DNA from: Basidiobolus meristosporus CBS 931.73
Lineage: Eukaryota; Fungi; Basidiobolomycota
Length of the DNA: 51,335 nucleotides
Assembly (NCBI GenBank): GCA_002104905.1
Contig: MCFE01000632.1
Location: forward strand, 1-51,335
Direction: 5' to 3'
Part shown: positions 3,208 to 35,870 of the stretch, one piece after another
Numbering within the stretch: position 1 is the first letter of the stretch
How the letters are laid out: each line of letters opens with the position of its first letter
Position numbers and translations under genes: made by a program
The notes under the pieces: generated by a model
What the model was told of the DNA's origin: nothing
What the model saw: the letters and a program-made list of their open reading frames with translations, nothing else
The model's database searches: none

Positions 3208-4857
3208 AGATACTGCCTTCTCTACCTGGGATATTGATTGCTCTATACCTATTATCCGCTCATCCTGTTTCTAGACTATTTCCTGATTTCTCTTGGCCAT
3301 TGCATCTATCCTATCAGCCACTGCACCTAATTGCTTCATTAATGTTTTGGTATGAGCTGACAACATACTTGCTAATATGGGTTGTGATGATGTTATGATG
3401 GCTACTTGCTAGTCTTCAACTGAGGGTACTGCATTTGCTACATTCTCATCTGCCTGAGGATTACAGTGTGGTGGTGTATAAGTCCAAGGGAGAGATACAT
3501 CCAACACTTCTTAAGTGTTTTGTGTGTGGGGTGTCCACTGGGTGCAATAATCTCTGGCAAAAGCTTGCTAGGAATACTTGGGTTCTGTCTCTAACTCAAT
3601 GTGATCGGGAATAAAGCCACAAGCTTGTCAAGAGAAAACTATTGAGCTACAATCCCCAACTTTGTTGCCATCTTAACAAAAGTATGTGCTGGGTTCAGCA
3701 TCTTTTTAGATGACAATGTACCAAAGCTTCCAAAGTCAAAACAATTGTGAACTCCACCATCAGGGACTTGATAAGAATGCAGCTTTGGTCAACAGTTACA
3801 AAGACAGAAGAGTATCTTTGCCTGTACAAGGACAAACTTGGGAAAGAATCAATTATTACAAAAGATACCTACTCTGAGTATTCCTCTCAAGTGGTGCCTC
3901 CAAGGTCAGTTGGTATATTGATAAAAGGGCTGCTGATTTATTGTTGAGCAAGTGCCTCCCTTATATACTTTTCTCACTGGCTAAGCAATTACTAATCATG
4001 GTGTTCTTGTTATGAATAGACACAAGGCAGGAGGAAAAGCTAGGCACGGTGTGGTAGGGTAAACATACCTCCCACAGACAAGTTTATTCATATAGTCATT
4101 ATGATATACTTATCCATATTTTATCTTATCAGTATTATCCCATTCTTCTTTTGCCCATATTATCAGTATTATCCCCATATGATGTTTACCCTGATTAGTT
4201 ATTAGCATTAGTTATCCCAGATGTTATTCAGCTTTGTGATCAGTAGATGTATCTATATAAGGCAAGTACCCGCGTCAGTACCCGTGACACATGACCTAGG
4301 TCTGTGTTACCATCTCTACCATTTCAATACCATATATGGTATTTCTATGTTGCACAGGTTTCAGACTACTGATTCCTGATTGGTTGAGAGTGCTGTGCCT
4401 TTTAGAACCTTCCAGGACATTCTTGGCATATTTTTAGCTCATAGTGATGTCATCAAGAATTCCACTGATACCTAGAATCTTCTAGAACCTTGTCATTAGT
4501 AATCACTTGGCAATCAGGAAAAGTATTTAAGGGAAAGCAATCCCTCATCAATAAATGATCCCTTCTATCAGTAACACTTCTACCTTATTGATTAGCAGTT
4601 GATCACTGCACCTGCCTTCAACAGTACATCTCAGACCTGCCATCAAGGAGCTTTTCAGGGTAGTGCACAAGACACACAGAGGCCTTTGGAGACACTTGGA
4701 GCACCTAGGAAGCTAGAGAAGCAGGAGCTTTTACCATAGAGACATACTGACAAAGACACCAGCAGTTTAGACCCAGAGGTTATTGCACCCATCAGACACC
4801 TCACACACTTTGAGTTGTGTAGCTTCTCCCAGGAGTACCTCTACACCACCACATATT

Positions 4858-4874
4858 TGGCACCCAACGTGGGG
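4858..4874 (+). other. Primer-binding site of element A, tRNA-Lys(CUU)-type
   Basis: TGGCACCCAACGTGGGG, 4 nt after the 5' LTR. One CpG>CpA change from TGGCGCCCAACGTGGGG, the complement of the 3' end of the common eukaryotic tRNA-Lys(CUU). Confidence 0.8.
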
Positions 4875-4927
4875 GGTTTGACTGAACTGCCCCTAGAAGA
4901 CTTAAGAAAGAACAAATTATCAAGACC

Positions 4928-6784
4928 ATGGATCTACCTTTACCAGGAATGCAAGGAACTCCTTTCTTTGATGGAACCAAAGTTAAAGCTTTCATCAAGA
5001 GGTGGGAGCTTTTCTGCAGAGCCCACAAAATACCTGAGGCCATTATGGCTGAAGAGATGCCCCCCTACAGCACTGATGAGATCATGCTCTCATTATATGA
5101 AAGAAATGATCTGCTGACAAATTGGACCCTCTTGAAGAGCTACTTGATTGATGAATATGGAGAGAGACAAGTTGACTACACACTTCAAGACTTGGAGAAC
5201 TTTGCTTATAGCAAGTTTAAGCAGCTACCATTGAAAGAATACTTGAGTGGCCTTGAGCAAATTGGAGAGTCACTGAAAGCCCAAGGCATTATCACTGATC
5301 TGACTTTATCTGCCTATCTGCTCAGAGCACTACCAGAAGGCCTGGTGAGAAGGATTGAAAACAATCCTACTGTGAAAGCTATGAGTTCACTGCCTGCATT
5401 TCAGTTAGCTAAGCAGATTCTACTTGCCCCTGAAGAAACCTCACCAATCAGAAAGCTTCTTTCAAGCCCAGAACAAAACCAAGATAGCCAAGACATACTT
5501 AATCCCAGCAATCAAAGCACTCAGATTCAGGAGCTGACACAGCAACTAGAGAAACTCTCTTTGCTACTTGCCAGCAAAGCATATGGTCAGAAGCCAGTAG
5601 CAAAAGAAGTCAAATATACATGCATGTGGTGTGACTCTGCCAACCATTCCAAGAGAAATTGCCAAGAGCTTCAGTCATTACTATCCACAGGTGATGTCCT
5701 ATATAGTCCTCAGGGATACATAGTCAGTAAGCATGGTGACAAATTATCCACAGCATTTGGACAAGGAGGAATGAGAGTTCACTACAAGCAAGTCACCTCT
5801 CATACAAGAAAGGTTCACCTCCGTGGAGAAGAAGATCTTGGCTACTTTGATCCAGCTGAAGTTCTGAACTTTGACTATGAGGACCCCAGAGAGGCCCAAG
5901 ATCATATAGCTTCAGTTTATGCTTCAAAGAGACACCATTCTGAAAAAATGGCTAATCCAGGCCCACCAACAAAAGTACCAAGATGTGAGCCAGAAGTTGT
6001 GATTGAGAAGAAAGCATCACCCCCATTAATTTTACAAGAGTCTACCAAGGCCAACAACTACCACATGCAGCCTAGAGTAAAGTAAAATGGTACCCCAGAG
6101 GCTCTGAGAAGTCATATACTAGGAAGCAACATATCAATCAAGGTTGGAGAGCTACTCAGTGTATCACCATCTGTAAGAAAGACTCTGGATGAGCATATCA
6201 GAATAAGAAAGCATCCAATTGAATCAACTCAAGGCAACCAGGTCAGGACAGTTCAAGGAAGCCAAAATATCAGTAAGCTGCATCAAAGCCAGAAACACTA
6301 CTACTCAGTGGCAACTGCAACAACTACAGGAACTGTGCATAATCAAGAAATCCTATGTCATATAGACAGTGGATCTGAGATATGTATGATGCCTTTGGAG
6401 GCTTGGAAACAACTACCATGCAAAGACTTATTGCCCATAGACACCAATATCAATTGGAGCATGAAGGATGCCTACTCAGGGCAATCAAAGCTTTTAGGAA
6501 TTATTCACAGCTTCCCTCTCATCATTGAAGGAATACCCCATGAGATCCCAGTATTCATATATGCAAAGGCTAACTTTGAATTACTTCTCGGAAGACCATG
6601 GGAGGTAAAAGCAAGAGCAACTGCAGTGAACTACCCAGATGGTTCAGCATGGTATACTATATACTCAGAGAGCCCAGGACTAACAGCAACCTTCTGTGGT
6701 GTGGACTCAAACAATATCCGATCAATGACATCATGTAGATTTCTATCTCAAGAAAGGACAGGTGGCTTCATTGAGGAAGACTGA
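4928..6784 (+). pseudogene. gag: Gag (CCHC knuckle), DUF4100-like linker and aspartic protease ORF with one in-frame TAA at 6083-6085
   Basis: ORFs 4928-6085 and 6308-6784 are in the same frame. Motifs: CMWCDSANHSKRNC, VGELLSVSPSVR, HIDSGSEIC. The DUF4100 resemblance is recognised by eye only. Confidence 0.82.
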
Positions 6785-6848
6785 GAGAGCACTTTGTTCT
6801 CCAAACTTACAGTGGTTAGCTAAAAAGTTCCCTGAAACTTTTTAGCTC

Positions 6849-6862
6849 AAGTGGGGGGTGGA
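6849..6862 (+). other. Polypurine tract of element A
   Basis: AAGTGGGGGGTGGA immediately before the 3' LTR. Confidence 0.8.
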
Positions 6863-8149
6863 TGTGGTAGGGTAAACATATCTCCCACAGACAAGTTTAT
6901 TCATATAGTCATTATGATATACTTATCCATATTTTATCTTATCAGTATTATCCCATTCTTCTTTTGCCCATATTATCAGTATTATCCCCATATGATGTTT
7001 ACCCTGATTAGTTATTAGCATTAGTTATCCCAGAGGTTATTCAGCTTTGTGATCAGTAGATGTATCTATATAAGGCAAGTACCCGCGTCAGTACCCGTGA
7101 CACATGACCTAGGTCTGTGTTACCATCTCTACCATTTCGATACCATATATGGTATTTCTATGTTGCACAGGTTTCAGACTACTGATTCCTGATTGGTTGA
7201 GAGTGCTGTGCCTTTTAGAACCTTCCAGGACATTCTTGGCATATTTTTAGCTCATAGTGATGTCATCAAGAATTCCACTGATACCTAGAATCTTCTAGAA
7301 CCTTGTCATTAGTAATCACTTGGCAATCAGGAAAAGTATTTAAGGGAAAGCAATCCCTCATCAATAAATGATCCCTTCTATCAGTAACACTTCTACCTTA
7401 TTGATTAGCAGTTGATCACTGCACCTGCCTTCAACAGTACATCTCAGACCTGCCATCAAGGAGCTTTTCAGGGTAGTGCACAAGACACACAGAGGCCTTT
7501 GGAGACACTTGGAGCACCTAGGAAGCTAGAGAAGCAGGAGCTTTTACCATAGAGACATACTGACAAAGACACCAGCAGTTTAGACCCAGAGGTTATTGCA
7601 CCCATCAGACACCTCACACACCTTGAGTTGTGTAGCTTCTCCCAGGAGTACCTCTACACCACCACAACGGCAGGAAAGGACTTAGGTGTGGACCATCAAG
7701 GCAAGGCAGGATTCAAGGCAAGGCTGTTTATTCAAGACCTGTGTTTATCAGACTGAGGAATACTTAAGGGGGGATAGGACTCTATATACTTTTTGGCTAT
7801 ACTGATGCCAAGAGATATTAGCTAATACTAATGGGGTTGTGGGGTGAGGCACAGCAATGGTGCCGGGGATAATGACATAGATGACACGGCACTGAGACAG
7901 GATGGGGAAATGGATTGGGTCACCTGATCATGTGACTAAGTCATGTGACCTGGTATTTCCATATATAGTACTGGACTATAAAAAATACGATGGAAAGCTT
8001 CCATGGAATGTTCCATTGTGTAACAATGGTTTGGAATGGTCAGAAACTTTCTGGAAGGTGGTAGAAGGTTCCGGAAGGAATCTCTTAGAAATTGAGCTGG
8101 GAAGCTGAAACTTGGCATGGGTGTTCATGGTTGTCATGTGATCATGACA

Positions 8150-11100
8150 CTATTCTCCTCTTCCAGGCAGAGCTCTGTTTCCCTTTGGGGCAGGTTTTGC
8201 AGGATATTGTTGGTGGAACTGGGTAACTAGTTCTTGACAATTAGTGAGATGTGTAGCTGGTTCCCATGTTTGGTCACTTGGGCCATAACCAATCCAGTCT
8301 ACTAAGTAGTACAGCTTTGACCAGATATACTTGGAGTCTAGAATCTGTTTAACTTCAAATTCTTGATGTTGGTCAACCTGGATAGCTTGGGGCTTTGCTT
8401 CTTGCCGGTTTGGCAATGTGTTCCTATAATACGGCTCCAGGAGGGACACATGGAAAGTATCATGGATTTTCGTACTTGCTGGTAACTGTAGCTGATATAC
8501 TATAGGGCTAAGCTTCTTCTTGATCTTGAAGGGACCAAGTTTCTTGAAATCCAACTTGTCACAAGGGCGGTTGGTGCTGATGTTTCTTCTGAGCAACCAT
8601 ACAGAATCTCCTTCATTAAGATCAGGGCTGGGATGCCGTTTTAGATTGGCAAATTTCTTGTAGCTTTCCTGAGCTAAGGATAGCTCTTCCTTGAGGGTGC
8701 TCTGGATGTCCTGGATTGCTTGGGCATGTTCAGCCGCATGTGGGCTCATTGGGTTTGTTGGAATCTGGATATCAAACTGAGGGTGGAATCCATAGTTTGC
8801 ATAGAATGGTGTAAAACCGGTTGCACTATGACTTGAGTTGTTGTAGGCAAACTCAGCAACAGGGAGTAGGTCAACCCAACTGTCTTGCTGGTAATTGATA
8901 TAGCACCGGAGGTATTGCTCCAGAATCTGGTTGATTCATTCAGTCTGGCCATCAGACTGTGGATGGAAGGCAGTAGAGAGCTTGACTTGAACACCAAGGT
9001 ATTGCATGAAGTGTTTCCAAAACTTGGACACAAACTGTGGGCCTCTATCTGACACAATATCACTGGGGATACCATGAAGGCGGAAAATATTCTTCAGGAC
9101 TAAAGCAGCAGTTTCTTTTGTATCAGTGTTCTTACAGCAAGGGATGAAGTGAGCCATCTTGGTCAGCCGGTCAGCCACTACAAGTATAGCATTGAAGCCA
9201 CATGACTCATGGAGGTCAGTAATGAAGTCCATAGATATAGATCTCCATTGGTGTTCTGGGATAGGCAGGGGTTGAGGAAGTCCATAGGGCTGGTGTCTGG
9301 CTGGTTTTGCACGGTTGCAAATATCACAAGTCAGAATGTACTCTTTGATAAGAGTTATCATTCTAGGCCACCAGAAATCTCTTTTGATAGCATTCAAGGT
9401 TTTGGCAGTACCAAAGTGGCCTGCAGCCATTGAATCATGCCAAGACTTAATGATGTCTAGCTGGGTGGCAAGGTCTGGGACATAAAGCTGCTGCTTGTGG
9501 TAGATGAGGTTGTTTACCAAATGCAGGTTCTGGATGTTTGGGAACTTGGGAGGGGGCCCAACTGGGGATTCCAGATATTTCTTGATGGTGCTGGAAGTCA
9601 TATCAGAGGCTTGGGGTTCTGATATCCTTACTAGGAATGAAGGGATGACAAGACTTGAGGACTGGGTGGCAAGAACCTCAAAATGTATCTTGCTCAGCAA
9701 TGGGTGTTCCATTTGCTGACAGGCATCATCTCCCTCTTCCAGGGCATATTCCTTTTTTCTGGACAGGGCATCAGGCTTTCCTTGCTTTGCACCAGGTCTA
9801 TAGGTGATAGTAAAGTCAAAGCTGGACAGGAAGAGTGACCATCTGGCTTGTCTCCGGTTTAGTACTTTGGAAGTTGCAAAGTACTCAAGGTTCTTATGGT
9901 CACAGAAGACTTTGATTTTGTGTTTTGCACCGTCCAGGTAGTGTCTCCATTGCTCAAAGTCTACAATGATGGCAAGCAACTCCTTATCATAGATATCATA
10001 GTTGATCTCTGCAGGGGAAAACTTCTGAGAGTAGAATGCAATGGGGTGCAACACATTGTCCTCATCATACTGGGAGAGTATGGCACCAAGGGCAAAATCC
10101 AAAGCGTCAGTCTCCACCATGAATTGCTTCTCAAGGTCAGGGTGGGCAAGCAGGGGGGCCTTCAGGAAAGATTTCTTGAGTTGGTTGAATGAGCTGGATT
10201 GCTCCTCATTCCAGGCAAAAGGTGTGCTCTTCTGGGTAAGCTTTGTCAGAGGGGTGACTATCTTGGAGTAGTTGGCTATGAACCTGCGATAGAAGTTGGC
10301 AAATCCCAGGAAGGATTGTACTTCCTTGACTGAGCTTGGAGTTTTCCAGGATTGGACTGAATCAACTTTCTATGGGTCCATTCTTGTTCCCTCAGGGCTG
10401 ATGAGATAACCAAGAAATTCCACTTCTCTCTGGTCAAATTCATACTTCTCTAGCTTGGCATAGAGACCGGCAGAGTCTAGTTTTCTCAATACTTTCTTGA
10501 CATGTTCATCATGTTCATCTTGGCTCTTGGAGTATATGAGAATATCATAAAGGTAGATTACCACAAACTGGTCAAGGTATTCACGGAAAATGTCATTCAT
10601 GAGGTGTTGAAACACAGCAGGGGCATTGGTGAGGCCAAATGGCATTACTTTGTTTTCAAAGTGACCATATCTTGTGCGAAAGGCAGTTTTCCATTCATCA
10701 CCGGGCTTGATTCTGACAAGATTGTAAGCTCCTCTCAAGTCAATCTCGGTGAAGACTTGGGCAGCAGATAGCTGATCCAACAGTGTGTTGATCAGGGGCA
10801 GGGGGTAGCGGTTCTTGACTGTGATCTTATTCAAAGCACGGTAGTCCACACACATTCTGAGTGTGCCATCCTTCTTCTTGACAAAGAGGATTGGGGCTCC
10901 AGCAGGTGATTTGGAGTGCTGATTAAACCCTTCTGGAGGTTTTCTTCAATATAACCATGGAGTTCTTTCAACTCCGGCTGGGAGAGGTTATATATTGGGC
11001 CAAATGGAGGGACTTTTCCATCTTCAAGGTCAATAGGGCAGTCATAAGGTCGATGGTCAGGGAGGAGTTCTGCTTTCTTCTTGTCAAAGACATGGGCAAA

Positions 11101-11697
11101 CTCTTGGTACTTGGCTGGTATGTTTGCTGGGGGGGCTCCTTCAGCTGGCAAGGTATCTTGGGCTGTTGAACTGTTGGCAACAGTCTTTTCACAGTTATCA
11201 GGGTCTGGAGATTTCATGGAGTTGACTTGGTGGGATCTGGTGAATGACAGGATTTTGAATTTCCAATCAATACTTGGATTGTGGTAAATCAGCCATGAGC
11301 TTCCAAGCACAATAGGATAGTGTGGTGAGTTGATGATGTTGAAGGCAATTCTTTCTTGGTGGGCAGTACTGGACAGCTGGAGTAAGCATGTTTCATGGGT
11401 AACGGCACCAGAGGAGAGTGATCTTCCATCAATAACTTCTACTTGGACTGGACAGGATTTCAAGGTAACAGGAATAGAGTGCTTCTGGACAAAGGCTTGG
11501 TCAATGAAACAGGATGAAGCACCGGAATCAATCAGGGCTAGGGCTGGGACAGGACCGGAGTCAGGGATCTGGATTTTGACAGGCATTCTCAAGGACTGGA
11601 TAGATTTTGTGGCAAAGGAAGATTCTTGGATATGCTGGATTTTCATGGGTGGGTCCAGTTGCAAGCCTGTCAGTGCAACTGGACATTGAAGTTTCCC
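8150..11697 (-). pseudogene. pol: B1 pol (PR-RT-RNase H-integrase-chromodomain), with frameshifts and stops
   Basis: Motifs LIDSGAS, RT YLYD (YLDD in copy 2), [24 protein letters not shown] and chromodomain FEVKQILDS...YLVDWIGY...TWEP, split over several ORFs. Confidence 0.95.
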
Positions 11698-12602
11698 AAC
11701 AGATCTGGATCAGGTTGGTTGCTGGAGGACTGCATCAGCTTGAAGCTGGACTTCTTGTTGGGGCAGGACTTGGCAAAGTGACCTGGTTGGCCACAGTATA
11801 GACAGAGGTTGGCTTGTTGACGTCTGGACTTTTCACTCTTTGATAGTTTCTTGTATTTGGCACTATCAATCTGCATAGGATCTTCTGGAGTGACTTGGGG
11901 AGCAGGAGGGGCTGGGACTGCAACAGGAATATGTCTTTGACGGTTCTTTTGCTTCTTCTGGAATAGTCTGTTATCACACCGGATTGCTTGGTGCATAGCT
12001 TCAACCAATGTATATGGATCTGGGAGTGTGAGTAGCAGATCACAAACTTCATCATTGAGGCCATCTTGGAATTGGCTAATCAAGGCTGCTTGACCCCAGG
12101 AGCTGAGGTCACTGGAGAGTTGTCGGAATTCTGAGGCATAGACTGATGCTGGTTTGTTCCCTTGCTTGAGGGTCTTGATCTTGTTGGCAGCAGTTCTGGC
12201 TTGGTCAAGGTTACCAAATGTTAGCTCCATTTCAGTGAGGAAAGCTTGGTAGTCTCTGAGGAGGGGAGAGTTGGTCTCCACTAATGGGGAGAACCACTTG
12301 AGAGCTGTACCAGTAAGCAGGTTGGAGATGAAACCAACTTTGGCCTGGTCAGTGGGGTACCGGTTGGGCTGGAGTGCAAGATTGTTCTTCACCATGTTGA
12401 TGAAACCACGGAATTCATTCTGAGAGCCATTGAACTTGGTAGCAGGAGTATACTTGGGTTCTTGGTAGACTGGGACATGGCTAGTTTGCTGGACACTTTG
12501 GTTCTGGAACTGAGCAAGAGTGTATCTGAGGTCTGCATAGTCTTGCTGCAGTTGGGTAAAGGCAGCCATGAGCTGGGCAAAGTTCAGCTCTAGGTTGGAC
12601 AT
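11670..12602 (-). CDS. gag: B1 Gag, intact, 310 aa
   Basis: ATG in CTACCATG context. Retrotransposon gag core (KFNG...LLTGTALKW) and CLYCGQPGHFAKSC zinc knuckle. Confidence 0.92.
   Translation of the reverse strand: MSNLELNFAQLMAAFTQLQQDYADLRYTLAQFQNQSVQQTSHVPVYQEPKYTPATKFNGSQNEFRGFINMVKNNLALQPNRYPTDQAKVGFISNLLTGTALKWFSPLVETNSPLLRDYQAFLTEMELTFGNLDQARTAANKIKTLKQGNKPASVYASEFRQLSSDLSSWGQAALISQFQDGLNDEVCDLLLTLPDPYTLVEAMHQAIRCDNRLFQKKQKNRQRHIPVAVPAPPAPQVTPEDPMQIDSAKYKKLSKSEKSRRQQANLCLYCGQPGHFAKSCPNKKSSFKLMQSSSNQPDPDLLGNFNVQLH
11691..11697 (-). promoter_or_regulatory. -1 ribosomal frameshift heptamer G GGA AAC (B1)
   Basis: Lies in gag frame near the gag end; pol is in the -1 frame; followed by an 11-bp stem. 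Confidence 0.8.
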
Positions 12603-12995
12603 GGTAGCAGAGGAAGACGGATGAACTTGCAAGGAATACTGGAATATACTAAACTAGATTGTGGGTTTGTAAAGCCACTAGTATGTCAAGAATACAACTA
12701 TTGAGCCACAATCCCCAACTTAAATAAGTTAGCGTCACTTCAGAAGGTACTGGTTTCAACGTCCTTTGATAGAGTATTGTACTAAAGCTTCCAATACTGT
12801 AACAACTGTAAACTCCACCAGCAGGGTAATAAAGTGAATGCAGCTTTGACCAATAGTTTTACAAAGATAAAGTATCTTTGCCTTTATAGGACAAGACTAG
12901 GGAAAGATGATGGGTAATACTTACGGTGAGTATTCCTTTTACAAGTTTTCTTCAAACTTTGGGCAGAAGGCAGGGATCCACAGGTAAGTCAGGAG

Positions 12996-13006
12996 AGTCT
13001 GATAAA
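12996..13006 (-). other. Self-priming-type PBS of B1 (sense TTTATCAGACT)
   Basis: 2 nt after the 5' LTR. Perfectly complementary to LTR 13124-13134 (sense AGTCTGATAAA). No TGG tRNA-type PBS. Confidence 0.8.
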
Positions 13007-13160
13007 ACTGTTATGAATAGACACAAGGCAGGAGGAAAAGCTAGGCACGGCAGGAAAGGACTTAGGTGTGGACCATCAAGGCAAGGCAGGATTCAAGGCA
13101 AGGCTGTTTATTCAAGACCTGTGTTTATCAGACTGAGGAATACTTAAGGGGGGATAGGAC

Positions 13161-13168
13161 TATATATA
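13161..13168 (-). promoter_or_regulatory. TATA box in LTR B U3
   Basis: TATATATA about 27 nt upstream of the inferred start site at 13134. Confidence 0.6.
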
Positions 13169-14699
13169 CTTTTTGGCTATACTGATGCCAAGAGATATTA
13201 GCTAATACCAATGGGGTTGTGGGGTGAGGCACAGCAATGGTGCTGGGGATAATGACATAGATGACACGGCACTGAGACAGGATGGGGAAATGGATTGGGT
13301 CACCTGATCATGTGACTAAGTCATGTGACCTGGTATATCCATATATGGTACTGGACTATAAAAAATACGATGGAAAGCTTCCATGGAATGTTCCATTGTG
13401 TAACAATGGTTTGGAATGGTCAGGAACTTTCTGGAAGGTGGTAGAAGGTTCCGGAAGGAATCTCTTAGAAATTGAGCTGGGAAGCAGAAACTTGGCATGG
13501 GTGTTCATGGTTGTCATGTGATCATGACAGTTCTAGAAGGTTCTAAAGATCAATAGAAATCTTAATGATATCAGAATGAACAAAGAGTACTCTTAGCAGG
13601 TGCCAGAAGGTTCTAAGAGGCACAGCGCATGCAACCAATCAGCAATCAGTACTCTGAAACCTGTGTAACATAAGGATGCCATATATGGCATAGAAATGGT
13701 AGGGATGGTTACATGGGTGGACCATATGTCACAGGTACTGGTGTGGGTACTTGCCTAATATAGAAGCACTTACAGCTAGTAATCTTACATAAAGTGAGGG
13801 ATAACCTATGCAATGAGGTAAGCAGGTGTGATAGTCAGCCAGCTTATGGGATAGCATTGATCAAGTAAAACAAAGGTAATAAAACTAAAATAAGTGTAGT
13901 AAAGAAATAGGGAAGTAGAAAATATGCAAATGAGCACATCTGTCAGTGGGTGTCACTGTGACTCCACTACAATGGTCAGCTTGTGGCTGTGCAGAGGCTC
14001 TCAATTGCCTACTTGACTATGAGCCTAAGGAGTCTGCATTATTATCTTCAGTAGGCACAGTGTTAACATGGCCATTTTTAGATATAGCCCCACTTGTTGC
14101 ACTGAATGTCAAAGCAAGCTGTGGTCCAACCATTCTTCTGCTGCTGTCTGCAGTGGGGTTTGGTTGAGGACCAGACAGCTCTGCTCTATTTTTTGGCAGT
14201 ATATATAAGGAAGTGAGTCAAGCTAAAGGGGATGTAGTGTTACATATACATGTGTATGTGGTGCCACAACTTTATTTGTAATGCTTACTATGGCGGGTCA
14301 TGATTGAATTTTACATTCATGTAGGTGCAATGGCTCAAATACAAGACTCTCTTGAATTCATATCAGTATTGACCAAAAGTGATATCATAGTGTTACATTG
14401 TTGGAGGTCAAACTTTCTGTCCAATGGACAATACTACTTTGATTCAATGCCGTAAGAGAAGAGAAAAAAGACTATGTGGCATGTGTAGCAAGCCTCTCAG
14501 CTATGAAGCATGCAGAGTGCATAGAAAGTATTAGAAGGATCATGGCCAGTGTTTTGCCACACAAGTCATATTTGACCATTCATTGGTCAATATTGTACCA
14601 ACATTATCTTGCCAGCCAGTTGATACTTCTCCACTTGCACCTGGCTGTCTTTGTCACCTTGTGCAAACTGAGTCAGGTGAGTTTGTGATGCCTTGAGGC

Positions 14700-17150
14700 T
14701 CACCTCAGCCTTCTGAATGTGGCATGCAGAGTGATAGCTCTGACAAAGAAGGTTCACTGATGGATTGTGAGCCTACATCCTCTGACAACCATACCATATA
14801 CATGCCCGGTCAAATCCCAATATGCAATGAGACAATACCTGTGGAAGAATATGCTGTCAATAATTTAGACTTATTTGATTTTGCCATTGATTGGGTCATA
14901 TGCATGTCAATTTTTATCCCAAATTGGCACTCTATGGCACCATCTGGCACTCTGTAGCTTGATCAGGTACCATCTGGCATGCTATGGCACTATTGGGCAC
15001 TATGATCAGCTGGAATGATGGAACAAGTCCTTTATGTAGCCAAGTGAGCCCTGTAATCCATCTGCTGGTGAATGATTTAGTGCTGTGGCTAGAGAAGTGG
15101 CACATTCCCCTAACATTGGTAATGGGGGTTTTGAGAATTTATTACTACTTCTTGCCAAAATCATTCTGGGATGCAACTTATCTTGTACATGCTACCAGTG
15201 GACAACTGCCATGCTGCTGGCAACATATGATCCAGCAACTGTCTTGATTCCAGCATGTGCTAACAGTGCATGGCATTCACATCCAAAAATGCTACCATTG
15301 CAACATGTCCAACTTGTCAGAATCCACCACCGTTAAGGGAAAGCATTGTTCACACTCTGGATATATTCCAGTAATACCCCATTTAAAGCAGCTCATGCAG
15401 TACAACAAATATTGCAGAGCTAAACAGTACCGCACTCAGTATCAATCAAATGCAAACATATCCAATGTATCTGATGGCAAACATTACTAACAGGTAAGAA
15501 GAACAGGCTAATTTGAATGGATGTATGACCATGCCTTTGCCCTAGCATCTGATGGATTCTCATTAAACAAGTACTGTACCAGCAAATCCTGCTGGCTATT
15601 GATTCTCATCAATCTGAATCTGCCACCTGCCTTACAATATCAGAGCAATAATCTGATGGTAGTCTCACTGGTATCTGGGCCTATATCACCAAGGGTATCT
15701 GTTGGAGCAAAATTTTCCACTGGGAGCAATGCATTTGCTTTTCAACAATATCCCTATACTGATGACCAAGTTGTGCATGGGGCATTTCAAGCTAAATGAG
15801 CCCTTCAAGATACCAGAGATATTTGAGGGGATTGGCAAGAAAGTACTGAGTATCTGCTACCCTAAGTACTTCTCAAGGGCTCCAATCAATATTCATAAGC
15901 ATATGCAACAATACAAGTGCAAGAACCGGATGAACTGGATATGTATTTATTCAAGTGGTGTTCTGAAGCCATTCCTACCAAGAGTACATTGGAAGCATTG
16001 CAAGTCATATGTGGGCATTGTAGCAATATTTCTTCAGAAGTGGATCACCAATGCCTACTTGATGCATCTACAGCTGCTGTGCAAGGAGTTTATGACCAGA
16101 TTTGAACAGCAATGCTACAAACATAAAGCCAAATGCGTAGATCTCTGCCACTGCTGCATCCATTCTCTACTCCAACTTTCTTGGTGTGTGGAGATTATTA
16201 GGCCTTGCTTCACCTTTTGGGGGTTTCCTATGTAGCAAATGTGTGGGGAGATAGGAAGATAAGTCAAGTTGCAGGTACCACCATATTCCAATTTCATCAA
16301 GATTATTACCTCAGGTCTGTCATGGATGTGATGAGTTGGCCCCCTGGAGGACAGCCAGGAAGGGTTGAAAAATACTGAGCACAGATGTGTACATGCAGAC
16401 ACCTATGCCTATGACATTAAGAAGCTAAGGAGCCCCAATATGTGAGTAATCAGTTAAGTAATGTAAAGCTGGGTTGGGTGCAATAAGCAACTAATTCTTA
16501 TTAGTAAAACTCTACCAAGGTGTGCCAGATTCCTCTTGGTCACAAGCCAACTTCTACACCATTTGATACAGATTTCACACAAACCAGAGCCAGGGAGCAC
16601 CTACAAGGGGTACTAGAATCCAGAAGGGACAAGGAATAAATTGGCTAAATACCAAGAAGCTCTTTGCAGATATTCCGGGGGCTTTCATGACAGAAGTGGC
16701 AACAACCAAGCATATATTTGCAATATGCATATGTTACCAGCAGTACAAGGTACATGGGAACTTTGCCAGTATCATACTGAAAAGCCATAAAGTTGAGGTG
16801 ATAGTAGTACATAAATTGTGGCAGGTGTGCGCATTTGTAGAGGTCAGTAGCAGGAGGACATAGTTTTTTCTGATTCAAGCTATATGTGGAATACCCAAGG
16901 TAGTAGTGGGTAAGCAAATCAAGAGGGGTGTTTCTGCAGTGAAATATATGTACTGCACAAGGGGAGGTGAAAAAGGAAACACCATTTGGTAAATTGGTAT
17001 GATAGTATTATACAGAACTAGCTGTAGGCTGCCATACTGCTGTTATAATGTCATCAGAGTCTCACTGTGTGGCTGTTGGAATATCCTCATGTTTTTTGCC
17101 ATATACAGCAATTGGTTGTCCTGACTGGTTGGATCTATTCAAAATAATTG
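14700..17150 (+). pseudogene. Tnp2-family (CACTA/EnSpm) transposase of Y1, degenerate
   Basis: Motifs ALASDGF...SCWLLILINLNLPP...VSGP, MHLLFNN, FSRAPINI and IHSLLQL...RPCFTFWGFPM in broken frames. Boundaries approximate. Confidence 0.85.
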
Positions 17151-21590: not shown

Positions 21591-22523
21591 CCAGCATAGG
21601 TATGCTAAGAAAGTATCTCAAGAAAAACAGAAACTATCAAAAGCAGAAGAACAAGGGTGCAATGGCTAAAAATCAGCAGCTTCCTCAAGAGCCCATTACA
21701 AGCAGGGCCAAAAGCATCAGACAAGCATCAAAAAGACATCAGGTAGCTCCGAGAGTGCCAAAAAGGAACCAGCAGGCAGACACAGATGTGTCAACACAAC
21801 CCTTATCAAGGAAAAAGCTCAAGAGGCACTCAGTCAAAGTAGCAGTACTATATGAAGAATAATTTGGTCCTGCAGGTGGATCCAATCTGGATTGGCTGTC
21901 AAGATGCCATCAGGAGACTGCAGTAATAACAGCAGCTTGGAATAAATGACCATTGACACATTCCTTTGACAGAATCACAACAGTACTTTGCTAATTATAC
22001 AGCCAAATAAAGTTGATAAAATATGACAGTGTTTGTACAGTGTTTTGCCAAGGGCAGCATGGCATTGTTGTGGTGTCAGTATTTTCCAACTCTTCCTGGC
22101 TGTCCTTCATGTGCCAACTCATCACATCCATGATGGACTTGAGGGTGATATACTCAATGGATTGGAATATGGTGGTATCTGTAACTTGACTTTTCTTCCT
22201 ATCTCCCACACATATGCTCCATAGGAAACTTCCAAAACGTGAAGCAAGGCCCAATATTCTCCACCCATCAAGCAAGATGGAGTAGCAAATGGATACAGTA
22301 GCAGTAGAGATATACTTGTTCAGCTTTATGTCTGTGGTGTGGCCGCTCAAATCCCATCACAAACTCTCCGCACACAAGCTGTAAATGTGCCAAGTTAGCA
22401 TTTGTGATCCACTTCTGGATAAATAATCCTGCAATGTCCACATACAACTCCCAATGCTTCCAATGTACTCTTAGTAGAAATGACTTCAGAAGGCCACTTG
22501 AATAAACACATATTCAGTTCATC

Positions 22524-22891
22524 TGTTATGATCTGCCGCTTGAATGTTTAAGTTAGATCAGTTTTTAGTCAAATCAATTAGTATATGTTTAGGTTATCAG
22601 TATATCAGTATTATCTATGAAATCAGTAGCATTAGTCAGCAAATGAAGCAGCAGATCCTTATCAGACAGAAATAGATATATTAAGTAGGATCTTATTGGG
22701 TGATGATGATGCAATCAAATGAGTCATCAGCCACAACCTACATTAGGAAATACAATTAGTCAGCAATTGATCTGGCAAAATGTATATAAGGAGCTGCTGG
22801 AACCTCAATAAAAATCAGTTCAAGTTTTAGTGAATACAATACTAGCTAAACTCCCTATTCCTCTACAACTCTTATACCAAGACTTGTAACA
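22524..22891 (+). mobile_element. Solo LTR C (Gypsy family E), 368 bp
   Basis: TGTTA...TAACA termini; 4-bp TSD CATC. The same LTR follows a PPT at 35674. Confidence 0.9.
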
Positions 22892-23834
22892 CATCTAGTC
22901 CTTGCACTTGTATTGTTGCATATGCTTATGAATGCTGATTGAAGCCTGTAAGAAGTACCTAGGGTAGCAGATTCTCTTTGATATCTTGCCAATTCATTCA
23001 TATTTCCCCAGTATCTTAAAAGTCTCATTTAGCTTGAAATGCCCCATGTAAAATTTGTTCATCAATATAGGGATGTTACTGAAAAGCAAACACATTGCTC
23101 CCAGTGGAAAGCTTTTGCTCTAATATATACCCACAATCTTAAGTATCTCTAGTTTGCAAATAATTCCATATTCTGACCAACAGCTTATAGCTTCCCAACT
23201 TTGGTGTAATTGCATACTGACTTATATACATTCTCTCTGTGGAAAGATGTGTTCTAACTGTTACTGTTTAGTAATAACAATGTGTGTGAGCTGTAAGGTA
23301 AGTCCCTTGGATATCACACATCTGACTACAATACAGTCCATTGTGCCCAGAAAAGCCAGCTATCTTCCTGATGGCTGGGGTATCTCCAATGCAGATGATA
23401 ATATGTGCATTTACATGATGGACATTTACTGTTATCCTACTGGAAAGCATTAAAAACTCATCCAGAAATGGATACAGGTAGCTTGCCAGGTTGGATGGTG
23501 ATTTAGGCCCAGATACCATGAGACTACCATCAGATTTTGGCTCTGATACTGTAGGATGGGCAGCAGATACAAGTTGAGAGGGATCAGTGGCCAGCAGGAT
23601 TTGCTGGTAAAGAACTTGCTAAATGAGAACCCATCATGTGCCAAGGCAGAGGCATGGCAATACATACCTTCAAGGTAGCCCTTGCTTCTTAGCTGTTTTT
23701 AATATTTGCCATCAAATATATATGATATACTTTTGCTTGATTGATACTCTACATATCTTCAAACTTGCCCTTCCTCCTTAGCTGTTTGTAATGCTTGCCA
23801 TCAATTAAATTGGAGGTGTTTGTGCATGCTTGAT

Positions 23835-24177
23835 CCCTAAGAAAAAAAATTAAGAAAAGGCCAACAAAATACCATCAAAATATCAGCTGAATTCCAAGTT
23901 TCTCAAACTTGACAACTCTCAATATCTCCATTATTAGCTGATGGGCAGGCTAGCAAAGAGATTCTCCAGGAGATGACTAGGCCTACAAGCATCCATGGTA
24001 AATATGGTAATTAAGTGCCCATTACTTCTTTCAAAAGTTACAATAAAAATTCTGAGCCAAAAACACAAGCTGAATATCAGCCAAATACCATTAGAATACC
24101 AGCAGAATACCAGCGGAGTACCAGCAGAATATCCACCAAAAATCAGATGAATTCCCAATATGAGATTTTTCATAGGG
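23835..24177. mobile_element. 343-bp MITE with CCCTA-type TIRs
   Basis: CCCTAAGAAAA...TTTTCATAGGG termini, 3-bp TSD GAT/AAT, subterminal AATACCAGCAG repeats. Interrupts the transposase alignment to Y1. Confidence 0.8.
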
Positions 24178-24892: not shown

Positions 24893-25590
24893 TGTAGCAG
24901 GGTCACAGTGACACCCACTGATAGAAGTGCTCATTCCCATATTTTCTACTACCCTAATATTAGCTTTATCCCATTTGTCTTACCTGATCAGTACTATCCC
25001 ATAAGCTGGCCGACTATCACTCCTGCTTACCTTATTGTATAAGTTATCTCTGACTTTACTTACAATTACTTGATGTGTGTGCTTCTTTATTAGGCAGGTG
25101 CCTGCGCCAGTGCCTGTAGCACATGACCAAGCCATGTCACCATCTCTACCATTCTCATACCATATATGGTATCCCTTTGTTACACCGGTTTCAGAATACT
25201 GATCCATGATTGGTTGGGTGTGCTGTGCCACTAGAAACCTTCTGGCACCTACTTGGAACATTCTTAGCTCATTTTGGTGCCATTAAGATTTCTATTAGAC
25301 CACTGGAACATACTGGAGCACCATGATCAGTAATCATTATGCCTGTGAGAAAAGTACATAAGGGAGGTAATCCCTCAACAATAAATCACCATCCCTTCTA
25401 TCAATATACCAACCTGTTAATTAGTATGATCACTGCTACCTGCTACTTCTGAACTTCCAATTTAGATCACAGGACACTCCCAGGAAACCATGCTGACAGT
25501 CAACTGACCTAGGAGGCACCATGTGCAGCATACTCAGAACAGGTATCTTTTATTTTATTTGATTCTTTCACAAGTTTGTTCTTGTACAAT
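24893..25590 (+). mobile_element. Partial LTR, subfamily A2 (3' end lost)
   Basis: Starts TGTAGCAGGGTCACAGTGACACCC; collinear with rc of 13971-13530 and 4007-3820. Confidence 0.8.
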
Positions 25591-29639: not shown

Positions 29640-31100
29640 CCTTATATGCCAATCACTTCTTGAATTGCAATAGCTTTATGGTAAGGTACCCAAGTGTGAA
29701 CTCTTCATGGAACATGTTGAATATCTGGGACATATAGCAACTAGCACAGGAGTTACCTTAGACCGTAAAAAGGTTGAAGTTATCAAGAATCTGAAGCAGC
29801 TCCATTGCATAGCGGAGCTCAGATTATTCCTTGGAATGCTCTTCTATTATTGGAGGTTGGTCAAGTCCTTTGCAAGTATTGCAGCTCCTTTAACTGATAT
29901 CCTCAAGTAAGAGAATACCTAAAAGTGGGACATAGCTTGTGAGACTGCCTTCCAGACACTCAAGAATGATCATGCTCAGCTACCAAGCTTAAGAATACTT
30001 GACTTCAGAAAAGAGTTTACTCTGTGCACATATGCATCCAATAATGCAATTAGTGGAGTGTTGAGCCAAGAACACAAGGGATAGGGCTACCCTGTTGCCT
30101 TTGAATCTAAGAAGCTGCACTCAGCAGAACAGAAGTATCCAGTGCATGAGAAGGAGACACTTGCTGTAATAAACTGTGTGAAGATATGGAAATGCTATAT
30201 TGAAGGAGTCAAATGAACTGTGAGAACTAATCATACCTCCCTCAAGTATATATTTACTCAGAAGGTACTCTCTAGAAGAATGGCAAAATGGAGGGAATAC
30301 ATTCAGCAATTTGATTTGGAGATTGTCTACTGCTCTGGAAAAAACAACATGGTTATTGACACCTTATCAAGATTAGAACAGGTTGCACAACTAAATCAGG
30401 GGCATGAATCAGATTGGCCTTGCCAATTACCAAAGTACTTGGAGGACCAAGTCATTCCTAATGAGGTGGATGAAGATATGAAGAAGATAATACAGGATGA
30501 AACCAGCAAATTTGTATTACAGGATGAAACACTCTACCAAATTGTTGATGGAAGCCGTATTGCCTGTTGCCCTTATGATGCTTGCCTGGATTTAATATAT
30601 AAGCTACACAATGCATATGGACATCTTGGAATTGAAGGAACCTATAGCCTTGTGAAAGTCAGAGCATGGTGGCCCAGAATGAAACATGACATTGAGAAGC
30701 TAGTGAAACATGCCCAAATTGCCAAATCAGCCAAGGGCAACAACAAAGGAAATACAACTGTTGCATCCTAGTAGCAATTGACTATGCCACTAAATGGCCA
30801 GTGGCTAAAGCTGTACCTATAGCCAGTGAACAAGAAGTTGTATGTTTCATCTACCAAGAGATGCTTATGAAGCTTGGATGCCCTGAAGAGATTCTATACA
30901 ATAGAGGAGCAAACTTTATGGCAAAGACATTGGAAGCTTACCTGGAAATGCAGGAGATCAAACACTTGAAAACCTCAGCATATCACCCCAGAACTAATGG
31001 AGTCACTGAACAGTTTAATGGATTATTTGGAAATATGCTGACCAAGTATGCAAAAGGGGTTGTCAGTAGATGGGATGAGTATATAAACCAGCTACTGATT
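29640..31100 (+). pseudogene. pol: Gypsy family E fragment 1 (RT C-terminus, RNase H, integrase N-part)
   Basis: VEYLGH, FASIAAPLT, RTNHTSLKY, RAWWPRMK and SAYHPRTNG. Confidence 0.85.
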
Positions 31101-31104
31101 TGAT

Positions 31105-34100
31105 AGATAACACTGATATACTTATAGACTAAACATATAACCAATTGATTTGACTAAAAACTGATATAACTTAAACATTCATGCAGGAGATCATAATATT
31201 CTCCCCTACTAAATTTAAGACGGTTCTCCTGAGCCTCCTTTCTTATGATACCTATACCTTGATGGTTCAGTATTATTTGGAAGCCTTACAAGCATCAGTC
31301 TGTCTCTATTAACTAAATCTTCCCATATATTCCCTGTATGTCCACTAATTGTTTATTTGCATATGGACATTCACTGATGATCTAGAAAGGTCCTGTCCAT
31401 TGTTGCTCAAACTTCTTCTGAGTCTTGTTTCTCAACAATATAAAGTTCCCAACTGTTACGGATTCTGGTGATATAGTCTTATCAAATCCCTGCTTCATCT
31501 TTTCTGTACTTTGAGATACTTTGGTCTGTGCCTCTTGACATCTTTTTTCCAGCTGCTGGTGTCTACTTGGTTGACTGAGTCCATCTTCTAAGGTGTCTGT
31601 AAGCTTTGGTTGCTTGAGATCTCCTGGAATTCTTGGTTCCCATCCATACACTAAGTAAAATGGCAATTGTTGGGTGGTGTTATGTACTCTTACTCTGCCT
31701 GCAAAAAGTGCTTGGTCTATATATTCATCCCATTTATTGACAGGTCCATTTACATACTTGGTCAGCATTGTTCCATATAATCCATTAAACCACTCGGTGA
31801 CTCCATTAGTTCTAGAGTGATACACCAAGGTTTTCAAGTGTCTTATTTGCTGCATTTCCAGGTAAGCTTCCAATGTCCTTGCCATAAAGTTTGCTCCTCT
31901 ATTGTATAGAATCTCTAGAGGGCATCCTAACTTCATAAGTATCTCATGGTAGATGAAACTTGCAACTTCTTGTTCACTGGCAACAGGTACTGATTTAACA
32001 ACTGGACATCTTGTGGCATGGGCAAATGCTACTAGGATCCAACAGTTGCATTTCCTGATAGCTGGCAGTCTTTCAATAAAGTCAATTCCCCATCTTTCAG
32101 ATGATCTTACTGGCTCCAAGGGAAAGAGCTTGGCTATTCTCTGTGGTTGGCCTTGGTTGATGTGGCAATTTGGGCATGTTTTCACTAGCTGCTGAATATC
32201 ATGCTTCATTCTTGGCCACTATGCTCTGGCCTTCACAATGCTATATGTTCCTTTGATTCCAAGATGTCCACATCCAGTTTATAGCTTGTTTGTTAAATCC
32301 AGGTAAGCAACATAAGGGCAACAGACAATACGACTTCCATCAATAATTTGCCATAGTGTTTCATCCTGTAATACAAATTTGCTGGCTTCATCCTGGATTA
32401 TCTTCTTGATCCCTTCATCCACCTCATTAGGATTGGCTTGGTCCTCCAAGTACTTTGGTAATAGGCTAGGCCAATCTGATTCATGCACCAAGTTGAGTTG
32501 TGCAACTTGTTATAATCTTAATAAGGCAGGGGCATTGGTGAGCCCAAAACTCATGACAAAGTGCTTGTAATGTCCATATCTGGTCCTGAAAGCCATCTAA
32601 GGGATGTCTTCTGACTTCACCCTAATCTTGTTGTATCCTGACATGAGGCCAATCTTACTGAATGTTATGGCTCCATTGAGTTGGTCCTAAAGCTCATCAA
32701 ACCAAGGTATGGGGTAATTATTCCTCACATCAACTGGGTTAAGGGATCTGTAGTCAATGCACATCCTGAGCATTTCATCATTCTTTTTCACAAAGAGTAC
32801 TGGTGCTCCCCAAGGTGACTTGCTGGGTCTGATATATCCTTGCTCCAGTAACTGATCTATTTGTCTCTTCATCTCTTTCAACTTCAATGGACTCATTCTG
32901 TAAGGTGTCTTACACACTGGAGGGCTATCTCCTGTGTCAATGACATGGTCCACATCTTTAACTGGTTGTAGTCTCATAAGTAGATCTAGAAATGCCTCTG
33001 AATATCCCTTGGAAAGAGTGTGGACCTTCTGGGGTACTGGAGTAGAGAAATTCTCCTGTAATAACACCATGAGGTACATCTGGATGCATTTTTTCAGTGC
33101 TTTACAGAAATGTATCTTGTTATGCTCACTTGTTTCACACACACTGGAATTGACCAAGTTGAAATTCAGTCTGGCAGGTAATTGTTTGTAGGTATGGTTG
33201 TTCTTCAGGATCTGAATAGCATGGGTTTTCCAGTATATTAGTGAATTACATCAAAATAGCCAGGTTTTTCCAAGAATATAGTCAAACTTGCAGTTCCCAA
33301 ATATGTAGGCCTGTAGGTTTTCTTTATAGTCATTATTCTTCATTCTTACTGGCAGAGTAATATGGTAGATTGTTTCAGAGCTCCCATCAGCTGTTGAGAC
33401 TTTAGTTGATTAGGTGAGTTCCTAGTATATTTCAGCTTTCAAGGCAAAATGCTCCAATTTGTGCTTCTGTGATGCTGCTGAGTCAATAATGATCTTGGCA
33501 GGTACTCCATTGATTACTCCTTCAAGTATAATGCTGTTTCTGAATTGGAAGGCATTTGGGATAGGGGGATGGTTCAAGAGTACATCTATGAGTGTAGATT
33601 TGTGGTAATGGAAAGTATTCCATTACTACAATATCTCAAAACCAGTATTGCACTCATTCTTTTATTTTGCTTTTTTGCTATTGTTGCACACAAGTGAAAG
33701 ATCAAGAAATTCTAACCCTGAAGAACAAATACTCCAGACCCTGAAAAGCAATCCACCCAAGAATATTATATCATACAGAACATGCAGTAGCACTACATGC
33801 TTCAAATTGCAACTCATTTGAATCAGTACTTGAAGAGTTATGACCAAAAGAGTCCAATTATCATATATACTAGGCCTCTATTGCTAGGATTACCATGATG
33901 ACTTTGATTGCATGTAACTTTTGACCCAGCCACTCAAATCACGTGAGATTCTTGCAGGTGCTGTGCCTATGTTCAATCTGTGCCACTGCAAAATATTAGC
34001 TTCATATCACATGCATTGCATGTGCAATTGCCCAAAACCTTGATCCTTCAGAAATTTCATATATATGACTTCCCCAGCTCAAAAATAAAGAGAGCCACTC

Positions 34101-34290
34101 TTTCCAGAATCCTCACACTACAATTGTAAGCTTAAAGGTTATCAGACTTCCCCTGCACCACTTGCACTGTTGAGTATTCTGACTTTGATTGGTACTACAT
34201 CAGTAAAGAAACTGCAAAGCTCACAACAATCCAATCTAAGTTCTAAAAGAAAACTACCACTTTTCCGTCAGAAAAGTCCCCTCTAAGAAA
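31105..34290 (-). mobile_element. Gypsy family E fragment 2 (PR, partial RT, integrase, PPT, start of 3' LTR C)
   Basis: PYRMSP...[12 protein letters not shown]...MCIDYR (32687-33157) and integrase ORF 31382-32209 ending WTGPF. PPT AGTAGGGGAGAA abuts LTR C sequence at 31198. Upstream boundary uncertain. Confidence 0.82.
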
Positions 34291-35870
34291 CCCCTTTACT
34301 AATTTGGAGATTGTCAACTGCCTTGGGAAAGACAACACATTTGCTGATGATTAATAACAACTGCAACAAGTTGCCTGACTCAATTTGGATCACAAAATGG
34401 ATTGGCCTAGCTTATTACCATGGTACTTGGGGGACCAAGCCATTCCTAACGGGGTGGATGCAGTGATCAAGAAGATAATAGAGGATGAAGCCAGTAAGCT
34501 TGTATTACAGGATGAAACACTCTGCCAAATTGTTGATGGAAGACCTATTGCCTATTGCCCTTATGTTACTTGACTGGATTTAATAAATAAGCTACATAAT
34601 GAATATGGATATCTTGGAACTGGAAGAACCTATGGCATTGTAAAGGCCAGAGCATGGTGGCCCAGAATGAAACAAGATATTTGGCAGCTAGTGAAAGCAT
34701 GCCCAGATTGCCCAATCAACCAGGGCCAGCCACAGAGAAATGCTGTACTCCTTGCATTAGAGCCTGTGGGACCATTTGCAAGATGGGAAATTGACTTTAT
34801 TGGAAGACTGACAACCACCAGGAAATGCAACTGTGGAATCCTGGTAGCAATTGACCATGCCATTGAATGGCCAGTGGCTAAAGTGCTACATGTAGTCAGT
34901 GAGCAAGAAGTTGCAAGTTGCATCTGCCATGAGATCCTTATAAAGTTAGGATGCCATATAGAGAATTTATCCAATACAGGAGTAAGCTTTATGGCAAAGA
35001 CATTGGAAACTTACCTTGGAATGCAGCAGATCAAACACTTGAAAACCTTGGCATGTCACCCTAGAAATAATGGAGTGACTGAGTGGCTGAATGGATTATT
35101 TGGAAAATGCTGACCTGCATGCAAATGGAGCTGTCAGTAGATGGATAAGTATATAGACCAAGCACTTTTTGCCTGCAGAGTTAGAATGCACAACACTACC
35201 CAACAATTTCCATTTTACTTAGTGTAAGGATGTGAACTAAGGATTCTAGGAGATCACACACAACCAAAGCTTACAGATGCCTTTGAAGATTTGCTTAGTC
35301 AGTCAAGTAGACACCAGCAGCTGGAACAACAATGTCAAGGCACATGCCAAAGTATCTCAAAGTGCAGAAAAGATGAAGCAGCAATTTGATACAACTATAT
35401 CATCAGAATCATTGACAGTGAGGAATTCTGTAATGCTGGGAAACAACACTCAAAAGAAGTATGGTCCACAGTAGACAGGATCATTCAGGAACATCAGAGA
35501 GTGTCCATCTGCAACTTACAAACTTACGGACAAATAAGAGAGTATCCGGGAAGATTTAGTTCATAGCAACAGACTCAAGCTTCAAAGACTTGCCAACAAT
35601 ACCAAACCATCAAGATATTGGTATCACAAGAAAAGAGATTCAGGAGAACCCTCTCAACTTTAGTAGGGGAGAATGTTATGTTCTACTGCTTAAATGTTGA
35701 AGTTAGATCAGTTTTAGTCAAATCCATTAGTTTTATGTTTAGCCCATCAGTATATCAGTGTTACCAATCAAATCAGTAGCTTTGGTCAGCAAATGAATCA
35801 GCAGATCCTTATCAGACAGCAATACATATATTGAGTAGGAGCTTATTGGGTGATGCTGATGCAATCAGAT

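Follow-up and report, generated by a model that had tools for sequence, protein, structure and literature searches.

A predicted helix-closed RNA domain shared by a chromovirus leader and the long terminal repeats of an unrelated retrotransposon family in Basidiobolus meristosporus

The 51,335-nt contig MCFE01000632.1 of the fungus Basidiobolus meristosporus CBS 931.73 (assembly GCA_002104905.1), referred to here in its full length as the window, carries long terminal repeat (LTR) retrotransposons in which one block of about 305 nt, hereafter the module, recurs in two settings: the 5′ leader of a chromovirus (element B, copies B1 and B2) and the LTR of a second family (A2, copies A2a and A2b). 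A self-comparison of the window, combined with the reading of junctions and Pfam scans, gave the following map (TSD, target-site duplication; PBS, primer-binding site; ORF, open reading frame).

46402–46705, plus strand: module in the B2 5′ leader, starting 58 nt after the PBS (46331–46343) and ending 30 nt before the gag ATG (46736)
12633–12936, minus strand: module in the B1 leader, the same as the B2 copy over 331 nt
3571–3884, minus strand: module in LTR A2a, ~50 nt past the inferred transcription start; a 104-nt LTR tail follows
25513–25588, plus strand: start of the module (~62–75 nt) in LTR copy A2b, truncated where a rearrangement intervenes
4008–13529, minus strand: chromovirus B1, with gag bearing a zinc knuckle (zf-CCHC), protease, reverse transcriptase, RNase H, integrase and chromodomain; LTRs of 521 bp; 5-bp TSD GTTCT at 4003–4007 and 13530–13534
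46219 to the window end, plus strand: chromovirus B2, 98.5% identical to B1
13975–13530 (upstream half), continuing at 4007–3467 (downstream half), minus strand: old LTR A2a, its halves split by B1
3967–3961 and 3942–3937, minus strand: TATA box and AATAAA of A2a, both upstream of the block
4050–7666, plus strand: element A, nested in the B1 3′ LTR, with a gag-like ORF and a protease-like ORF

Element B is a chromovirus, with a Ty3/gypsy order of pol domains and a chromodomain at the integrase C-terminus (Pfam: RVP, RVT_1, RNase H, Integrase_H2C2, rve, SH3_Tf2-1 and Chromo). Between B1 and B2, 5,021 aligned columns contain 75 differences, none of them in the 413 nt (46369–46782) that cover the module and the start of gag; as a longest-gap statistic, this identity is not significant (about 0.15, an estimate). 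Element A reads in plus sense: its ORFs are on the plus strand, a tRNA-type (TGG-type) PBS follows position 4853, and a purine tract precedes 6863. LTR A2a shares ~75% identity with the LTR of element A (LTR A) in opposite orientation and ends in ...CACCACCACA at 3467, as LTR A does; being inverted relative to the plus-sense LTR A, the A2 pieces place A2a on the minus strand. Since B1 and A2a are both minus-sense, their module copies lie in sense orientation to each other. The B1 insertion point is inside A2a, 123 bp from the A2a block.

A profile search of the window (nhmmer) returned exactly four copies of the module, namely those of B1 and B2, that of A2a and the truncated A2b start (25517–25588 in this search). 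A2a 3564–3892 aligns with B at 12626–12946 and 46392–46712 (69% identity over 337 nt, E value 1.4e-38), and plain self-BLAST of the A2a and B blocks recovers 75% identity over 254 nt, bearing out the sense homology between the A2a LTR and the B leader that a preliminary description of this locus had proposed. That description assigned the A2a block to U5; its place in the LTR stands, and U5 is the probable assignment because the conserved TATA box and AATAAA both lie upstream of the block. The claim that the host elements otherwise differ also holds: their LTRs are unrelated, the TSD is 5 bp in B and 4 bp in A, and for priming B carries a putative self-primer, A a PBS of the TGG type. Compared with LTR A, the A2 block is a clean insertion or replacement with LTR-A-like sequence on both sides. 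The younger LTR A is without the block, as had been noted, its ~190 nt at the corresponding place showing no significant similarity; the idea that it keeps remnants of the block was rejected, the local alignment being no better than shuffles. Nor is an ORF conserved in the module, again in line with the earlier claim, as every frame has at least two stops in each copy; a protein search with an ORF-like stretch inside the module gave no match. A module 18-mer returned 20 matches in metagenome contigs, all of them chance matches, and none in viral contigs.

The B gag has no exact record in the protein look-up and one close relative in the protein collection (P0001, 80% identity). This relative is encoded on contig L001, which also carries an LTR end, the same PBS as B and the module (87–90% identical to that of B). 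A covariance model (R1) of the 161-nt core of the module was built from B, L001 and A2a, with a further contig, L025, excluded; R1 finds the core in L025 at 179–357 (68.7 bits, E value 2e-16), directly upstream of a gag (P0002) that is 50% identical to B gag. Here too, the module is preceded by an LTR end and a related PBS (GTTTGATCAGACT). The module is missing, even with filters off, from a further seven gag relatives whose upstream sequence reaches 270 nt or more (L022–24, L026 and L032–34); L027–31 and L035 offered too little upstream sequence to be scored for it. A maximum-likelihood tree of gag groups B with P0001 and P0002 (support 98/93). As the module carriers B, L001 and L025 thus belong to a single gag clade, the module is a trait inherited within one chromovirus subclade.

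Judging from its sequence, element B appears to self-prime as Tf1 does. The TATA box at 13162–13169 lies 28 nt upstream of AGTCTGATAAA (13134–13124, minus strand), which would form the first 11 nt of the transcript and is complementary over 11 nt to the PBS GTTTTATCAGACT (13008–12996, minus strand) directly after the LTR. Self-primer and PBS are kept in L001 (67–78), while L025 keeps a related PBS (33–45) on a contig that starts inside U5, so that the primer end falls outside its sequence. Tf1 of fission yeast is a self-priming chromovirus. The likeness of B, L001 and L025 to it, each with a PBS directly after the LTR, concerns the priming of B and not the module, and we know of no comparable leader module in Tf1. 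As a separate observation, B2 (46219–46345) is without a normal 5′ LTR. What stands directly ahead of its PBS is the final ~110 nt of the LTR (R-U5) in inverted orientation, as would be expected if self-primed reverse transcription had yielded an aberrant fold-back product.

The main landmarks of the structure predicted for the sense strand of the module are as follows.

46401–46409, plus strand: 5′ strand of the closing helix, AGGAATACT, pairing with AGTATTCCT at 46698–46706 and extended by ACTTG/CAAGT
46480–46642, plus strand: core used for the covariance model, 161–163 nt, eight helices, 49 pairs
12696–12858 and 3637–3797, both minus strand: equivalent cores
46540–46565, plus strand: apical hairpin with a 7-bp stem and a 12-nt loop, GAAGCUUUAGUA

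The block is modelled as an RNA domain of ~305 nt closed by a 9+4-bp helix. The predicted fold is a long branched rod composed of the closing helix, a CCCUAGU/ACUAGUGG helix and the CAAAGA hairpin, followed by a AACUAUUG/CAAUAGUU helix, three inner helices and the apical hairpin. Three parts of this fold had been put forward in the preliminary description and are recovered here: the helix-closing ends AGGAATACT and AGTATTCCT, extendable outward by CTTG/CAAG, are present in B, L001 and A2a; the CAAAGA/TCTTTG hairpin is found in all copies, with a longer loop in A2a; and the long-range AACTRTTG/CAATAGTT pairing is present and covaries in L025.

RNAalifold applied to B, L001 and A2a returned 84 pairs, including two helices that each contain three stacked pairs changed on both sides. 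Two such runs occurred in one of 400 column shuffles, against which the consensus energy of the full block has a z-score of −5.1. For the core, six of the 49 pairs are changed on both sides among the three distinct sequences (2.0 in shuffles; none of 500 reaches six). With L025, which played no part in deriving the structure, this rises to 14 of 49 among four distinct sequences (4.7 in shuffles; again none of 500 reaches the observed count), with 94.3% of cells paired and slid-register controls at 0–5. The apical stem of L025 is wholly rewritten yet kept, with 10 perfect pairs, and the AACUAUUG/CAAUAGUU helix, the long-range pairing of the preliminary description, has become GAUAAAUUG/CGAUUAUC. 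There are 24 G-U cells in the sense structure, and mirroring onto the antisense strand lowers pairing from 94% to 86%. Divergence between L001 and A2a is 17% in paired columns and 38% in unpaired ones. Between B and L001, the block is 89.6% identical, compared with 65.5% at gag third codon positions and 66.7% in the 30-nt spacer after the block. Although their gag proteins are only 50% identical, B and L025 agree fully in two strands of internal loops, GGAGUUUACAGUUGUU and AUCAAAGGACGUUGAA, and the apical loop holds an AAGCUU palindrome in B, L001 and A2 (in A2a as well as in the majority form described below).

The covariation, the G-U asymmetry, the conservation of paired columns and a divergence far below that of gag third positions together argue for a multi-helix RNA domain that is read on the sense strand. 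The conserved, helix-closed RNA domain of the preliminary description is thereby upheld, and the module appears to be under purifying selection with compensatory base changes within the chromovirus subclade.

The A2 family was followed across the genome by aligning contigs of two sequencing runs of the same organism to positions 3250–4049 at a likeness of at least 80%. Block-bearing A2 LTRs account for about 7,600–8,600 contig pieces per run, the contig depth in the block is like that of the LTR tail, and single contigs span 3465–3913 unbroken (~82% identical to A2a). The block is thus a regular part of a very abundant A2 family, within which it decays at the same rate as the LTR tail (~17–19%). 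Loose ends of these public contigs pile up exactly at 3467, confirming the A2a terminus. A segment of ~87 nt, carried by most A2 copies and by A2b (25414–25500), has been lost from A2a at 3908–3913, a place between the TATA/AATAAA region and the module.

The direction of exchange was approached with an A2 majority version, in which 22 letters of the 314-nt A2a block were set to the read-majority letters; it is approximate, as 14 further variant places were not included. Its core shares 85% identity with L001, 78% with B and 68% with L025. With the A2 copy nested inside the B/L001 branch, the chromovirus was the donor and the A2 LTR the recipient. When a structure is derived from nothing but the chromovirus copies, the majority core keeps 41 of its 47 pairs, and the three double changes of this core relative to L001 all keep pairing, with none broken. 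The module is native to the B/L001/L025 subclade, and the A2 LTR captured it from an L001-like donor. The exchange between unrelated LTR families envisaged in the preliminary description is therefore borne out, with no TSDs and no sign of free-standing copies of the module, and it now has a direction, from chromovirus to A2. The captured unit corresponds exactly to the helix-closed domain, which fits two template switches: with two RNAs co-packed in one particle, reverse transcriptase would have crossed from one to the other and back, each time where the closing helix has its foot.

On balance, and with real reservations, we favour an explanation in which the module is a structured leader domain of the chromovirus that acts in cis, most likely in packaging or dimerisation by Gag, and that was copied into A2. 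In B, L001 and L025 the module occupies the interval from the PBS to the gag ATG, and in A2 it lies upstream of the LTR end instead. The domain would act in cis on the genomic RNA, its likeliest job being that of a recognition site for Gag/nucleocapsid in dimerisation and packaging, via GGAGUUUACAGUUGUU and AUCAAAGGACGUUGAA; the identity of these strands in B and L025 despite the distance of their gag proteins makes them the best candidates for protein contact. If the packaging role holds, A2 RNA could compete for chromovirus Gag.

Several points weigh against this explanation. The independent sequences number just four, and the L025 row is model-aligned, leaning towards the structure. Single-sequence folding is ordinary (z-scores of −1.4 for B, −2.1 for A2a and 0.0 for L025), and for A2a and B the minimum free energy is well below that of the consensus structure. 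B and L001 are ~90% identical across their entire LTR-leader stretch, and a recent exchange of 5′ ends could explain part of their low divergence. The AAGCUU palindrome is absent from the L025 loop, GAAACCCUUUAGUA, which weakens a reading of this loop as a kissing-loop dimerisation site. On the A2 side, the LTR ends and the PBS differ from those of B, making mobilisation by B proteins doubtful; the younger LTR A does without the module; and six of the 47 pairs are broken in the A2 founder, which would also fit a passenger no longer in use.

Comparison with known systems offers some support. Retroviruses and Ty1 have dimerisation and packaging signals between the PBS and the gag AUG (PMC6844567, PMC5086612). 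Like the Psi packaging signal and dimerisation initiation site (Psi/DIS) of human immunodeficiency virus 1 (HIV-1) and murine leukaemia virus (MLV) and the 5′ region of Ty1, the module is a multi-helix RNA in this interval with compensatory changes. By analogy with Psi-type leaders, its invariant unpaired strands could be bound by a zinc-knuckle Gag, and B gag has a zf-CCHC domain. Unlike Psi or the Ty1 signals, to which it has no sequence or Rfam similarity, the module resides in a Tf1-like, self-priming fungal chromovirus.

Some retroviruses have portable nuclear export elements for unspliced RNA. A leader domain with a job other than packaging, whether gag translation, RNA stability or nuclear export of unspliced RNA, is the alternative that survives best, although we consider it unlikely; the A2 copy may or may not share such a use. 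It draws on the same structural evidence as the packaging explanation, and in each of the three chromovirus lineages 8–35 nt separate the end of the module from the gag AUG. Moreover, the module is placed differently with respect to the PBS in the chromoviruses and in A2, a freedom that position-independent RNA elements have. The sense leaders contain no AUG in 405 nt (B) or 396 nt (L025), where 5.6–6.2 would be expected and the antisense strands have 4–8, suggesting that ribosomes probably scan through the module. What speaks for packaging is that the interval from PBS to gag is the classic site of packaging and dimerisation signals in retroelements (PMC3735527, PMC6844567). Two specific functions raised in the preliminary description fared poorly. 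An internal ribosome entry site (IRES) is not supported: leaders with an IRES usually tolerate upstream AUGs, and the AUG-free leaders of B and L025 suggest ordinary scanning. A ribozyme finds no counterpart among the Rfam ribozymes: the Rfam covariance models, those for IRES elements and retroviral Psi included, at gathering thresholds gave no match anywhere in the window, and at E-value thresholds around both copies the only matches were chance-level small nucleolar and long non-coding RNAs (snoRNA/lncRNA; E values 0.46–8).

A bolder version of the packaging explanation treats the module as a self-contained 'pack me' signal for chromovirus Gag, the capture of which would have let the apparently non-autonomous A2 enter chromovirus particles and possibly heterodimerise with chromovirus RNA, and so fuelled its expansion to thousands of copies. 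We regard this as speculative and, on present evidence, improbable. If true, it would represent natural cross-family parasitism by theft of a single RNA domain.

The nearest functional analogue of the arrangement seen here is barley BARE2, which keeps the packaging and dimerisation signals of BARE1 and is packed into BARE1 particles (PMC3735527). As with BARE2, a second element carries the leader signal of an autonomous one and outnumbers it. BARE2 differs in being a sister of BARE1, with LTRs, PBS and non-coding framework common by descent (PMC3735527), whereas here LTR, PBS and TSD are unrelated and only a ~305-nt domain is common, upstream of the PBS (in U5) instead of downstream. Template switching between co-packaged RNAs is known to yield chimeric LTR retrotransposons (PMC1950507, PMC6894440). 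In the cases reported, whole LTRs or large segments are exchanged between members of a family or a pair of partners, in contrast to the entry of one folded domain into a foreign LTR described here. Soybean SARE/SNRE is reportedly a case of such recombination or LTR swapping. In Cassandra, a terminal-repeat retrotransposon in miniature (TRIM), the LTRs contain a cellular 5S gene, a conserved and structured RNA module that brought along its own pol III promoter. Cassandra and A2 both carry a foreign RNA module in their LTRs, the donor for A2 being the leader of another retrotransposon. In the open-access papers searched, we found no report of a single folded domain crossing between LTR families unrelated in LTR, priming and TSD.

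A still less probable reading holds that the structure matters in the chromovirus and that the A2 copy is a neutral by-product of recombination, carried along by A2 amplification. The broken pairs of the A2 founder (6 of 47, compared with 1–4 in the chromoviruses), the lack of the module in the younger relative LTR A and a decay within A2 equal to that of the LTR tail are all as expected for such a passenger. They have to be set against the three A2/L001 double changes that keep pairing, the capture of the whole block at the foot of the closing helix, in sense and in a presumably transcribed part of the LTR, and the fact that it was the form with the block that rose to high abundance.

That the block is a spliceosomal intron of the 5′ untranslated region (5′-UTR), its ends joined by the closing helix, is very improbable: B, L001 and A2a do have GTAAGT or GTAGGT 13 nt inside the 5′ end and, at the 3′ end, AG right before TATTCC, but L025 has neither GTAAGT nor AG at the homologous places, and no branch-point motif is conserved. 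Furthermore, the internal helices covary, which introns do not need, and the depletion of AUG on the sense strand of the block implies its retention in scanned mRNA; the joint that removal of the block would leave is absent among the 15 listed of the 34 joints in A2-type DNA copies. An origin as a small fold-back DNA transposon resembling a miniature inverted-repeat transposable element (MITE), independently inserted into the chromovirus leader and the LTR, is largely refuted and barely credible despite 9-bp terminal inverted repeats and halves complementary along their whole length, as no copy has a TSD of its own, the two contexts remain homologous for a few bases outside the repeats, contig depth is no higher in the block than in the flanking LTR, the best-supported loose ends do not include the block edges, the module is inherited vertically in the chromovirus clade, and the G-U asymmetry and compensatory changes point to selection at the RNA level.

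Little is known of packaging and dimerisation signals outside retroviruses (PMC6844567), and they have been described for very few LTR retrotransposons; the module adds a discrete leader domain supported by covariation and is a candidate for a new RNA family. Its three diverged natural versions, together with a natural transplant into a foreign LTR that is now among the most abundant repeats of the genome, make it possible to test which RNA features are seen by a fungal chromovirus Gag and whether one stolen domain suffices for exploitation.

Element A is a young, non-autonomous element, with LTRs of 804 bp that are 99.5% alike and a 4-bp TSD (ACGG). Its 3.6 kb code for just a 385-aa gag-like ORF and a weak protease-like ORF; the gag has no Pfam match and no homologue among 5.8 billion proteins. 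In this respect, it is a TR-GAG-like non-autonomous element (compare PMC4350172).

Elsewhere in the window, two decayed Transposase_21 transposons (tnp2, CACTA/KDZ-type) were found at 14476–16235 (plus strand) and 21991–24173 (minus strand), with Pfam E values of 1e-7 and 5e-4. LTRs A2a and A2b each adjoin copies of one degenerate tnp2 transposon and are therefore duplicates of one larger unit, the LTR having been copied along with the transposon, and not independent insertions. A repeat, 'S' (3275–3463 and 1110–1297), abuts the A2a end one way round and an LTR A copy (286–1092) the other; elsewhere in the genome, copies of repeat S continue into the sequence found next to the A2a start (loose end at 3458). 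Finally, 29674–35160 holds fragments of a further Ty3/gypsy element, the pol of which is 24–32% identical to that of B, and these fragments are set as inverted and direct repeats (30362–32526 versus 34365–35781).

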